Assembly: GCA_964035545.1 (NCBI GenBank) | Contig: OZ037770.1 | Location: forward strand, 4,434,662-4,498,661 | DNA: 64,000 bases | Reading direction: 5' to 3' | Source: Bugula neritina | Taxonomy: Eukaryota > Animalia > Bryozoa | Shown: piece after piece, positions 49,356-62,862 of the stretch | Position numbering within the stretch: the stretch's first letter is position 1 | Layout: the number at the start of each line of letters is the position of its first letter | Translations under genes and position numbers: made by a program | Notes under the pieces: model-generated | What the model was told of the DNA's origin: nothing | The model's database searches: none | The model's input: the letters and a program-made list of their open reading frames with translations, nothing else

Positions 49356-49582
49356 ATGATAATCTGGTTCAGACATTCTGGACAGCCTCCTGTAAGCTGG
49401 ACAGATGTACAGTATGCTAATACCCAGTCATATACTACTGCTGAGGTAAAGTGTAAAGTTGGGAGTTATAATATCACACATCTCAAACTGGAGAGAACAA
49501 TTCCAAGTAACATTGGAGAGATTGCTGGTAAAGCCCTGTGTCTATATGTTTCTAAACTGAGTGACGGAGCAAGTCTAGACAA
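49356..49582 (+). CDS. Roco-caspase first coding exon (N-terminal cap)
   Basis: Acceptor tttcag at 49350, ATG at 49356, donor AA|gtgagt in phase 2 matching the LRR exons. Confidence 0.7.
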
Positions 49583-52500
49583 GTGAGTGTCTATTAAAAT
49601 AGCAGTGTAAATGTTGAATGAGTGATAATAGATAATATATGCTGAAGCTGAGGCATCTTTTTGCTCAGAATATATTCATACATTATAATATACATCAACA
49701 TAGTAATATGTGCAACATTGTATGTAATCTTTTTATGTCAGTGAGTATTCCAATGTTTTGTAATTGTTATTGTAATTGTTTGTGGATAAACAGATATTGA
49801 GATAAAGAAGTTTGGATTAGTTTCGAGTGGTAAATAATCTTTAATCTGTCTCAAACCATAAGCCAGAGAATTTACTACAAACACACAATAAAGTAATATC
49901 AGTATAAGTGATGCTTAGACACAAAAGGATTATATAACCAAGTACATGTAATTACTATAAGGTATGCTATCATCAACATAATCTGAATGAGAGTATAATT
50001 TTAGACATTAGAGAGTGAAATACTGCCTGTACTGCTATTCGATAGCATTGACTGAATCATGTTTTATGTATATATGGCTAAAAACTGAAGTAATGCACAG
50101 TTTAAAATTTATTATACAAAAGACTACGTTATGCCATCAACTGCAAATATACTATAATAAACATTAGTTAATATATTAACTTACATAGCTTTGTAGAGTG
50201 AGACCTCATGTACTATAAACTAACAGCTAATCTTGCAAAATGAAGCTTCCTCTCTTTACCTACAACATAATATAACTGAAACTCTTTGCTTTTATTTGCG
50301 ACAATATATGTGTTTCCTGCATGTTTTTTGTTAAATACACAAGTCGTAATATATAGTATATATTATTTTGATTAAGTAGACATAAATACATGACACACTT
50401 TATATTACAGCCTATGTCAGCTGACTCAGTTAGAGAAACTAGACATAGGATGGAATCATCTCAACACAGTACCAAAAGTTGTGTCATCACTCACATCACT
50501 TAAAGAGTTGAGTATGTGGAACTGTAAATTATCTACTCTACCTGAGAGGTTTGTGTCACAATATTTCTTCTGTTTTAAACATTCAATATTTCACATCTTT
50601 AATGCTTATCAAGTAGGCTACTGCCAACGTATGTTGAAAACTTCAATATGCATTTTTTGAACTTATCTAATAGCTTGTCTTAATGTGAAAATAATACAGT
50701 TTTTTGGTATGACACTGCATATCATTATATCACAAGAACTTTTTGTAATGGATAATAAAACAGTCATCTGCAGTTTACTGGCAATCGTGGCAACAATCAA
50801 ATCTTTCTAACTGAATGCTTTTTAGCTTCTTGTCCTAATGACTTTGACTATCCATTGCCGGAATGTATTTTGTTTTCTGCATTTTTTACCTGGTTGAGTG
50901 CACCTAAGCAACAATATAGTCTATACAGTGTATATTATTATGACACATTTGACTACATATATCCTATTTTTTATGATTATTACAGTCTATGTCAGCTGAC
51001 TCAGTTAGAGAAACTAAACATGAGAGATAATCATCTCAACACAGTACCAGAAGTTGTGTTATCACTCACATCACTTAAAGAGTTGGATATGAGGAGCTGT
51101 GATTTATCTACTCTACCTGAGCGGTTTGTGGAACACAGTCTTTCTTGTTTCAAACACTCAAAAATTCACATATTGATATAATGCTTACCAAGTAATGTTA
51201 ATTATTATGTCACTATGTATTGTTGAAAAGCATAAAGCTATAAATTAGAATTTTTTTGAGGCTATATGATATTAGAGTTTCTCAAAACTTGAAAATAAAT
51301 ATGTTTCAGTTATCTGGCATTACATTTCCTAATGCTATAAAACCTTCTTCAACAAATAATATAACACCCACTTGTAGCTACAGTTACTAGTATCTTTTTC
51401 CCATTAAATGTTTATTGACCTTCTATATTTTACTTTGAAAATGTCTTGTCGGAATAAATTTGTTTCTTGCATATTATACCTGATTGAATGCACAAGTAGT
51501 GTATACAGTATATACTATTATTCTGATACAGTGGATTACATATATTATGTACTTTATATTACAGTCTATGTCAGCTGACTCAGTTAAAGAAACTAGACAT
51601 AAGATGGAATCCTCTCAACACAGTACCAGAAGTTCTGTCATCACTCACATCACTTAAAGAGTTGAATATGTGGAACTGTGATTTATCTACTCTACCTGAG
51701 AGGTTTGTGTTTCACAACATTTCTTCTGTTTCAAACATTCAATATTTCACATCTTCAATGTTTATTAAGTAGTATTATGCTATGCTATCATATATTGCCA
51801 ACCTATGTTAAAAACTTAAGTGTGCATTTTTTGAACTTATCTAGTAGCTTTTGTCCTAACGTGAAAGTAATACAGCCTATTGGTATGCCATTGTATATCC
51901 TTATATCACAAGAACTTTTTGTAATCGATAATAAAACAGCCATCTGTAGTTTACGTGCAATCATGGAGATAACATAATGCTTTTTAGCTTCTTGTAATAA
52001 CTTCGACTATCCATCGCGGAACGAATTTGTTTTCTGCATTTTTTACCTGTTTGACTGAGCTTGAGGAATATTATAGTCTATACAGTGTATATTATTATGA
52101 TACAGTAGACTACATATATCCTACCCTTTATGATTATTACAGTCTATGTCAGCTGACTCAGTTAGAGAAACTAAACATCGGAAGGAATCCCCTCTACACA
52201 GTACCAGAAGTTGTGTCATCACTCACATCACTTAAAGAGTTGTATATGTGGAACTGTGATTTATCTATTTTACCTGAGAGGTTTGTGGAGTACAGTCTTT
52301 TAGTGTTTCAAATATTCAATAATTGTTGCATTCAATTTGATTCTTTGATATTATACCTGATTGAATGCAGAAGCAGTATATACTATAATTATGTACCGTA
52401 TAGTATAATATAATATTCTGATAGAGCGGACTATATATGTACATTTTCTATACTCTTTATATTTCAGTTTATGTCAGCTGACTCAGTTAGAGAAACTAGA

Positions 52501-61500: not shown

Positions 61501-62862
61501 TGATTTGCTCGCTCCTTTGAGTCTGAAGCCTAAACCTACAGTTGTCATCCTAGAAGCTTGCAGTGGAGGTAATCACCCGTTAAGTAAATAACAGTATTTG
61601 TCTCGTTTAGTTGAGTAGTTTCAGTAGCAAAAACATATCTTTGACTCAGCCATTAAAATTGAATTTATTGACTGTTTTCTCTTAATTTAAAGTATTATAT
61701 AAATCCCAATATTTCTGCTTCAGTAAACATTGAGGTGAATCCAGACAGATCAGGTCTTGCAGCAGCTCAAGAAGAAGAAACTGAAGATGTCTCTTCTACA
61801 CATTCTGAATCTGATGATGATATTGTATATCCTGAAACACCCAGTGTAATAAGACCAATCAGACCTGTCTTACCACCAGAATATAGAATAGAAGAGCGGT
61901 GGACCAGACTGGAAATTGATAATCTTCTTGTTCTAAAGAGTAATGTCTGCTGTAGGTGTATACTAAATAGTGATTGGCTAGTTTTACATGTGCACAATCG
62001 CAGTTATTCAGGATGTTGTCTCTCCTTAATCCAATCTTTTAGACTTGTCTTCAAAAAAGGTATAACTAAACACTGCTCAGAATCAAAACTAAACAAATTT
62101 TTAAAATATACTGAGCTTGCTCTGATTACATTATGCATTTGGCTGCATTCAATCTTATTATAGCATCAAAGAGACATCCTGAGTATGGATCTCCTATGAT
62201 TAGAGCTCTAGTATCTTCAATCTACAAACATGCTTGTCACCGTGATCTCTACACCATCTTTCAGCAGGTAAGTTAAAAGCTCGAAAGTTTTTTTGCTATT
62301 TTAACTTTTACGCCAGAAACTATTCCTCATCGTGGCATCGCCTCCATCTCCATGTGTTCAAACCATTATGTCAATTGAAAGAAACAATTTAAGTTGTTCT
62401 GAGTACAAGAGAAAGTCATTCAATGCTTTACTTGTTTGAATTGTGGAGTTTACTCTCTGTTGTTACAGTTTCTTTAGAGTACTGGCTCAGTACTATATTG
62501 ATAGTCTCTTTCTTTTTTTAATATGTTCTTGTAGTCTGCGCTAATAACTGGTTCACTTTATCAAATGACTTTACTGTAGCGGACAACTCCAAAAGTTTTA
62601 CTACTCAGGATTGTTAAAGTAGGATACAATATTCTACCAGCTGGGAGTTGTACTTTATTACTTTTAGTAGTGAGTTTATGAACAGTCTTACTACTCATTA
62701 CTTACTCTACAGGTACAGACTAAACTAGTGAAGAAACTCTATGCAGATGAAGATTCAGAGAGAAGCAGAAATTTGGTTGTAATCTGGAAGACTCTTCCTC
62801 CCCGTAAAAGACTTTACTTGTTTCCAGGCTTTGATGGGTTTGGTGAAGAGGCCAAATTTTAA
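49356..62862 (+). CDS. LRR-ROC-COR-caspase fusion protein (Roco family, MFHAS1-like core plus C-terminal peptidase C14), about 1434 aa
   Basis: 16 coding exons: 49356-49582, seven 138-nt LRR exons, 57930-59932, 60256-60348, 60532-60680, 60936-61106, 61355-61568, 61724-61951, 62164-62267 and 62713-62862. All are GT-AG, phase-consistent, total 4305 nt with no internal stop. ROC motifs [17 protein letters not shown]. Caspase motifs [46 protein letters not shown]. Confidence 0.88.
50411..50548 (+). CDS. LRR cassette exon 1
   Basis: [45 protein letters not shown]; 138 nt, phase 2/2. Confidence 0.9.
50986..51123 (+). CDS. LRR cassette exon 2
   Basis: [45 protein letters not shown]; 138 nt. Confidence 0.9.
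51565..51702 (+). CDS. LRR cassette exon 3
   Basis: [45 protein letters not shown]; 138 nt. Confidence 0.9.
52143..52280 (+). CDS. LRR cassette exon 4
   Basis: [45 protein letters not shown]; 138 nt. Confidence 0.9.
52468..52605 (+). CDS. LRR cassette exon 5
   Basis: [45 protein letters not shown]; 138 nt; both framework prolines are lost. Confidence 0.85.
52892..53029 (+). CDS. LRR cassette exon 6
   Basis: [45 protein letters not shown]; 138 nt. Confidence 0.9.
53359..56917 (-). mobile_element. Degenerate Academ-like DNA transposon inside the LRR exon array
   Basis: TAG...CTA termini and a 3-bp TSD (TAC). Imperfect TIRs of about 110 bp (gcagaac..ggttcgcaa..cgga..aggtgggtgtg). Minus-strand remnant [24 protein letters not shown]...LQP resembles the XPG-like GCD/LPPT region of Academ proteins. 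Removing the element restores the intron motif gactacatat. Confidence 0.75.
53833..54034. repeat. (TA)n microsatellite
   Basis: Direct observation. Confidence 0.95.
56936..57073 (+). CDS. LRR cassette exon 7
   Basis: [45 protein letters not shown]; 138 nt. Confidence 0.9.
57512..57541 (+). pseudogene. Truncated LRR pseudo-exon 8
   Basis: Only the first 30 nt of the cassette remain, and the acceptor is mutated (ttacag to ttacgg). Confidence 0.85.
57930..59932 (+). CDS. Large exon: final LRRs, ROC GTPase and COR domain
   Basis: [19 protein letters not shown] (typical pre-ROC motif), P-loop [10 protein letters not shown]3 DMGGQEVY, G4 THKD, COR motifs LPKVW and [11 protein letters not shown]. 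Confidence 0.93.
60936..62862 (+). CDS. Caspase (peptidase C14) domain exons: p20, acidic linker, p10
   Basis: [43 protein letters not shown]; VVMTHG..IYGTD; VVILEACSG; [15 protein letters not shown]; [13 protein letters not shown]. Confidence 0.9.

Follow-up and report, generated by a model that had tools for sequence, protein, structure and literature searches.

A Roco-caspase fusion in Bugula neritina and its candidate role as a one-chain receptor

The window analyzed here is a 64,000-nucleotide stretch of AT-rich, animal genomic DNA from the bryozoan Bugula neritina (contig OZ037770.1), and its positions 49356-62862 carry a gene that joins leucine-rich repeats (LRRs), a Roc-COR module of the Roco type, and a caspase within one polypeptide. 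This Roco-caspase fusion is real, because Watersipora proteins and an independent paralog keep its order and exon borders, and it is conserved and has expanded as a family. We consider it on balance probable that the gene belongs to a large, lineage-specific bryozoan family of cytoplasmic receptors in which a single chain combines an LRR sensor, a Roc-COR switch, and an initiator-type caspase that would be activated by COR-driven proximity.

Results

One gene encodes the LRR-Roc-COR-caspase protein

The gene is modeled as 16 forward-strand exons with GT-AG boundaries at all introns, which together provide 4305 nucleotides (nt) encoding 1434 amino acids (aa) with zero internal stops in a test of the spliced frame. 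The joined protein was used for that test only, and searches and folding were run per exon. The encoded domains follow the order 17 LRRs, ROC, COR-A/B, a short linker, and caspase p20 and p10. Fourteen of the LRRs come from seven 138-nt exons of phase 2/2, and three come from a 2003-nt exon in whose AlphaFold model the strands were counted. An initial annotation of this DNA, made from its letters alone, had read an open spliced frame of about 1434 aa with about 17 LRRs, and both features are borne out. Pfam searches matched LRR, Roc (2e-7), COR-A (7e-4, under the cut-off), and Peptidase_C14 in exons 12, 13, and 15.

RNA contigs from three studies (X1, X2, and X3) lie on the exons and leave the introns almost uncovered. 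Their joints connect exon 10 to exon 11 (60347>60531), exon 13 to exon 14 (61568>61725), and exon 15 to exon 16 (62264>62710), and loose ends run from exon 12 into exon 13. In all three studies, exon 11 is joined to exon 12 (60674/60678>60933/4), which carries the linker into the caspase. Where exon 9 ends, contigs cease matching at 59934 and continue with 9-20 other letters, and the matched letters up to 59934 include two that are common to the donor and exon 10. Thus, of the junctions 59932-60256-60532-60936 named in the initial annotation as a check, the second and third were found joined in family contigs, but 59932>60256 is absent among the RNA joints listed, though contigs leave there exactly. 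Because most contigs are 90-99% alike to the window, they speak for the family and not for the window copy. Distinct contigs are stacked at single sites, up to 25-29 on an LRR exon and approximately 10-17 on ROC and caspase sites, which shows a large multi-copy family, although the height of a stack gives no copy count.

The same architecture is found in Watersipora subatra RefSeq proteins of 1419, 1413, and 1105 aa that contain LRR, Roc-COR, and caspase domains; accessions with the architecture of the window protein are XP_067947674.1, XP_067948342.1, and XP_067932893.1. In addition, the JGI contig L003, an independently assembled paralog, has four of these exons with identical borders, namely the one for COR, the two for the linker, and caspase exon 12. 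These data bear on whether two adjacent genes, a Roco and a caspase, were mistakenly read as one, which we regard as very improbable. Two genes would fit the missing 59932>60256 joint and the lack of a caspase at the end of some Watersipora models, but exon 9 has neither a stop nor a 3' end after COR, the RNA contigs exit at 59934 into other letters, exon 10 is joined to exon 11 and exon 11 to exon 12 in RNA, full-length Watersipora proteins have a linker homologous to exons 10 and 11, and the exon chain of L003 is identical.

When the window and L003 are compared, exon 12 (60915-61118 against 2880-3083) is 92% identical and the COR exon is 78% identical. This contrast may reflect either stronger constraint on the caspase or gene conversion.

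The Roc-COR module is intact

Exon 9 (57930-59932; 2003 nt) encodes three LRRs, ROC, COR-A, and COR-B with a CxHC...C motif. Its AlphaFold model (pLDDT 92, pTM 0.90) has as best structural matches LRRK1, the C. tepidum Roco, and LRRK2, with 650-770 alignment columns, E-values down to 1e-25, and TM by query of 0.5-0.6. Because this match spans the full length, both COR-A and COR-B are present and COR is complete, despite the weak Pfam score. The ROC motifs are intact and comprise G1 (GNTMAGKS, model residue 502), the G2 Thr of switch I, G3 (DMGG, 556), and G4 (THKD, 625); all four fit alignment columns with 95-100% conservation across 42 relatives. The exon therefore encodes the intact ROC GTPase and the COR that had been predicted. 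Pfam, profile matches, and the model agree on a Roc domain with G1-G4 and COR-A/B directly after it, which is the Roco arrangement. Per-exon Pfam and the structural match identify the nucleotide-binding domain as Ras-like Roc and not as NACHT or NB-ARC.

A flexible linker leads into a caspase with a deviant active-site motif

The linker and caspase exons were assessed by aligning each caspase exon separately to full-length relatives, and the COR-linker-caspase fold was read from the model of the Watersipora homolog P0045 as a stand-in. Exon 10 (60256-60348) encodes one helix after COR, which has a counterpart in L003 and a homologous helix in Watersipora proteins. Exon 11 (60532-60680) encodes a disordered acidic linker with a conserved D-L-S-D motif, followed by a helix into the caspase. 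The homolog model shows the same succession of a helix, a disordered acidic stretch (pLDDT <50), and a helix, which fits exons 10 and 11. Within these 80 aa between COR and caspase we found no Pfam match and no CARD, DED, or death fold, in agreement with the initial annotation. The motif D-[LV]-S-D is kept in the disordered linker of the window protein, L001, L003, and six Watersipora proteins, and may mark either a point of release or a target of a kinase.

The caspase begins in exon 12 (60936-61106), which encodes the start of p20 and the first S1 arginine (REGS; Peptidase_C14 1e-10), and continues through exon 13 (61355-61568), which encodes the catalytic His (THG) and Cys (EACSG; Peptidase_C14 1e-5). 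Exon 14 (61724-61951) encodes the acidic inter-subunit linker and the start of p10. Its donor is ambiguous, since 61951 and 61957 are both in frame, and only 61957 gives the usual length of the L3 loop. Exon 15 (62164-62267) contributes p10 sequence with the second S1 arginine (SKRHP) and a GS-x-x-I helix, and is 64% identical to P0045; exon 16 (62713-62862) encodes the final p10 strand (LYLFPG) and the stop. Two other donors, at 60684 and 61955, fall out of frame and were discarded, and 60680 was confirmed by L003. The Peptidase_C14 matches in exons 12, 13, and 15 and the Watersipora homolog model, which aligns to caspase-9, caspase-3, and caspase-7 with TM by target of approximately 0.8, indicate a p20-p10 caspase fold. 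The solved structures that the homologous domain of Watersipora resembles most are CED-3, caspase-3, and caspase-9.

The prediction of a complete caspase therefore holds for the fold, the His-Cys dyad, and the two arginines of the S1 pocket, but the S1 Gln is Glu and the length of the L3 loop is uncertain. The active-site motif reads EACSG in the window copy instead of QACxG, which makes the activity of this caspase uncertain. Ser in place of Arg in the motif is common in the family, with Watersipora proteins having QACSG and one having QACGG. The S1 Glu is peculiar to the window copy among the aligned caspase domains of Watersipora, amphioxus, and the protein P0171 described below.

The LRR face is variable and built from exon cassettes

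The seven LRR cassettes, each of which encodes two LRRs, are exon 2 (50411-50548), exon 3 (50986-51123), exon 4 (51565-51702), exon 5 (52143-52280), exon 6 (52468-52605), exon 7 (52892-53029), and exon 8 (56936-57073), the last of which is covered very deeply by paralogous contigs of both RNA and DNA. Across the cassettes, exposed beta-strand positions hold on average 3.2 different residues compared with 1.5 elsewhere (permutation p ~1e-5). Calculated over cassette pairs that are not independent, the proportions of nonsynonymous (pN) and synonymous (pS) differences are 0.33 and 0.17 on the concave face (ratio ~1.9) and 0.06 and 0.10 in the framework (~0.6). The LRR concave face is thus variable and assembled from interchangeable exon cassettes. 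Inter-cassette introns are 73-86% alike in patches, which indicates that tandem duplication built the array. A decayed forward-strand cassette at 57512-57583 has the acceptor CGG instead of CAG and was excluded from the model; it still matches live cassettes exactly over its first 30 nt, which suggests recent conversion or partial duplication.

Upstream of the cassettes, the coding part of exon 1 (49356-49582) encodes a 75-aa N-terminal cap that matched no Pfam or Atlas family and weakly matched residues 76-118 of Watersipora P0024. Because the start codon at 49356 directly follows an acceptor at 49350, a further upstream exon is possible.

Related fusions occur in amphioxus

A phmmer search returned 96 representatives below 1e-30, and the nameable ones among the top matches are from Watersipora. 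At least 11 Branchiostoma proteins also have LRR, Roc, and caspase domains; examples include B. floridae C3XQ16, C3ZI91, and C3YRK1, as well as XP_035697785.1. In close amphioxus paralogs, a GT4, death, OTU, or TIR domain takes the place of the caspase, and Lingula relatives carry CARD in the C-terminal slot. Because sister Rocos hold CARD, death, GT4, OTU, TIR, or caspase domains at this position, the C-terminal slot is an effector slot. Animal LRR-Roc-COR proteins (P0091 and P0094, of which P0094 is named Lingula, and Branchiostoma P0123 and P0172-P0188) exchange C-terminal effectors as bacterial systems do, and one also has an N-terminal HEPN. A different fusion, P0171 (L002, 217-2967), joins pannexin-like/LRRC8, LRR, and caspase sequence; it was rejected as a relative in architecture because it has no Roc.

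In a tree of Roc-COR sequences, the bryozoan proteins form a single long-branch clade, and the amphioxus caspase fusions lie among other amphioxus Rocos, adjoining hemichordate ones. When two long rows are removed, the bryozoan clade groups with Lingula (support 95). Forcing the bryozoan and amphioxus proteins into one clade gives a worse tree that is not rejected (approximately unbiased test, p 0.086). From these sequence comparisons, the bryozoan and amphioxus fusions likely arose separately.

Of two metagenome scans, one gave no matches and the other gave one GC-rich caspase-like match that is probably bacterial. Xu 2011, Zmasek 2007, and a paper on bivalve caspases are silent on any such fusion, and a literature search that was thin on subscription journals found no paper on the bryozoan family and no functional test. 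The earlier view that no animal protein with this architecture had been characterized stands insofar as we found no functional characterization, but the layout itself exists in amphioxus and a caspase is listed among bacterial effectors. The bryozoan fusion is one form of the already known LRR-Roc-COR-effector layout, a form that is uncharacterized in animals.

Surroundings of the gene

A young Ty3/Gypsy long terminal repeat (LTR) retrotransposon lies upstream at 38592-45674, with identical 343-nt LTRs (38592-38934 and 45332-45674) and TTAT flanking both sides. Its reading frames comprise an open gag-like frame (38991-39995), pol with reverse transcriptase, RNase H, and integrase (40053-44279), and a third frame with a weak C2H2 match (44342-45055). 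Upstream of this element, 37807-38150 shares 73% identity with the beginning of exon 9 across 243 nt and is interrupted by stops and frameshifts; judged from this resemblance, the decayed paralog is a relic of an earlier family member. Intron 7 contains, on the reverse strand at 54877-55723, broken coding fragments that resemble a transposon-derived protein without a Pfam match, adjoined by a 200-nt (TA)n run at 53834-54034. Elsewhere in the window, an open reading frame at 4899-5639 encodes the last part of a RhoGAP domain (Pfam 1e-12) and is an exon of an unrelated neighboring gene. Tandem arrays occupy 28767-30912 (70 copies of a 30-nt unit) and 16149-16817 (48 copies of a 14-nt unit), and a perfect 44-nt inverted repeat with a 1-nt spacer lies at 34874-34962.

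Discussion

The anatomy of the protein was observed, and from it we infer its ligand, the coupling of its parts, and its output. At rest, the LRRs and Roc-COR would hold the caspase monomeric or mis-positioned. Binding of a microbial or non-self ligand to the LRR face would alter the nucleotide state of Roc, and contact between one COR-B and another would allow two caspases, positioned approximately 80 residues behind COR-B, to meet and dimerize. The dimerized caspases would then cut the acidic inter-subunit linker and may be freed at the D-[LV]-S-D motif, which would lead to cell death or inflammatory signaling. Such a protein would use a Roco switch in place of the NACHT or NB-ARC plus CARD of inflammasomes and the apoptosome. 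Work cited in PMC2575513 describes caspases activated by forced dimerization. The proposal of a one-component receptor is strengthened by the conserved fusion, the diversifying LRR face, the large family, and the CARD, death, and GT4 domains in the same slot of sister Rocos, but the layout is less unique than was assumed.

Several observations weigh against a receptor of this kind. The RNA is mostly derived from paralogs, and no contig covers the span from LRR to caspase. Several Watersipora models of the clade stop before the caspase, and these are either split models or true members without one. Gene conversion may explain the pN and pS values of the cassettes. In the window copy, Glu replaces the S1-pocket Gln, and the L3 loop may be two residues shorter. 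Finally, the best-studied Roco, that of C. tepidum, dimerizes in the empty and GDP-bound states and is monomeric with GTP (PMC5714945). This cycle makes a simple scheme in which GTP turns the receptor on by dimerization unlikely. The active state may be a dimer that forms after hydrolysis, or the logic may be reversed.

Under reversed logic, a GDP-bound or empty COR dimer would keep the caspases apart or inhibited at rest, and GTP binding after ligand would split the dimer or drive higher-order assembly, which would free the caspases to pair. The C. tepidum cycle (PMC5714945) fits this scheme, a constitutive COR dimer that carries a tethered caspase would otherwise be lethal, and the long flexible linker permits either geometry. 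However, initiator caspases require proximity, and loss of a dimer would be a less direct trigger, so we consider reversed logic unlikely but the most serious of the alternatives. Slightly less likely is that the family works as proposed and the window copy is a weakened or re-specified protease, such as a decoy, a regulator, or an incipient pseudogene. The unmatched EACSG motif, the possibly short L3 loop, and the paralog origin of most RNA point in this direction, as do the decayed cassette at 57512, the transposon remnant in intron 7, and the decayed paralog at 37807, which show fast birth and death. Nevertheless, its His, Cys, both arginines, and GTPase motifs are intact, 1434 codons are open, and exon 12 is far closer to its L003 counterpart than the COR exon is.

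The ligand could also be non-microbial, with the family serving colony allorecognition or programmed polypide regression and metamorphosis, or guarding host proteins. Variable LRR faces and family expansion would suit self/non-self recognition in colonial animals as well, and RNA was present in all three studies, but amphioxus, which is solitary, and bacterial counter-invader systems have the layout too, and we judge a non-microbial ligand improbable.

The one-chain receptor that we favor has counterparts in several systems. Zhang et al. 2008 (PMC2575513) described amphioxus "LRRs-caspase" genes and proposed a direct link from recognition to apoptosis; its text nowhere mentions a GTPase, and its gene models are not tied to the amphioxus database accessions. 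The amphioxus LRR-Roc-COR-caspase proteins in databases share the one-chain layout of the bryozoan gene, but they keep QACRG, their linker is short, and their Roc-COR is approximately 20% identical to the bryozoan one. The bacterial LRR-AP-GTPase-COR proteins of Kaur et al. 2021 (PMC8195603) have at least 24 C-terminal effectors, including caspase, and their variable N-terminal LRRs, AP-GTPase/Roc, COR, and C-terminal effector are all found in the window protein; a cyanobacterial COR-CHAT cluster was seen as a further bacterial comparison. However, those proteins are prokaryotic and their counter-invader role is predicted only, whereas the bryozoan effector is a true animal p20/p10 caspase and its LRRs are exon cassettes.

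Brown algal LRR-ROCO proteins resemble the bryozoan family in their expansion, in LRRs encoded by shuffled exon cassettes, and in diversifying selection on the concave face (PMC3341825, PMC11378527). They differ in that they are mostly effector-free, with three members that have another peptidase (IPR009003), and in having one LRR per exon where the bryozoan gene has two; the word "caspase" is absent from the text of the 2024 brown algal ROCO paper. LRRK1/2, MFHAS1, DAPK1, and the C. tepidum Roco share the LRR-Roc-COR fold, and relatives are labeled "MFHAS1 homolog" in databases, but these proteins have a kinase, a death domain, or no effector, are single-copy, and are 10-15% identical. NLR inflammasomes and the Apaf-1/CED-4 apoptosome likewise couple a repeat-based sensor through a nucleotide switch to a caspase activated by proximity, but they rely on STAND ATPases, ring oligomers, CARD/PYD adaptors, and a separate caspase, which are features that the bryozoan protein does not have.

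If active, the protein would be an animal immune or cell-death receptor that operates without an adaptor and in which a Roco switch replaces the STAND ATPase. Such a Roco protein would have a direct, single-step, and easily read output. It would also open a long-standing question about Rocos to direct testing, namely which nucleotide and oligomer state is "on" and what the LRRs sense; the tethered caspase would act as a natural proximity reporter of the Roc-COR cycle, a matter of continuing debate in LRRK2. The locus itself contributes cassette statistics and a deviant active-site motif. The family would also carry over to animals the idea, drawn from brown algae and bacteria, that Rocos are variable immune receptors, and it would offer a first handle on bryozoan immunity. 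More tentatively, and at somewhat less than even chance, bryozoans may use a large, fast-evolving repertoire of one-chain Roco-caspases as a main system of intracellular surveillance, a counterpart of the inflammasome that is gated by a GTPase, needs no adaptor, and originated independently of the one in amphioxus.

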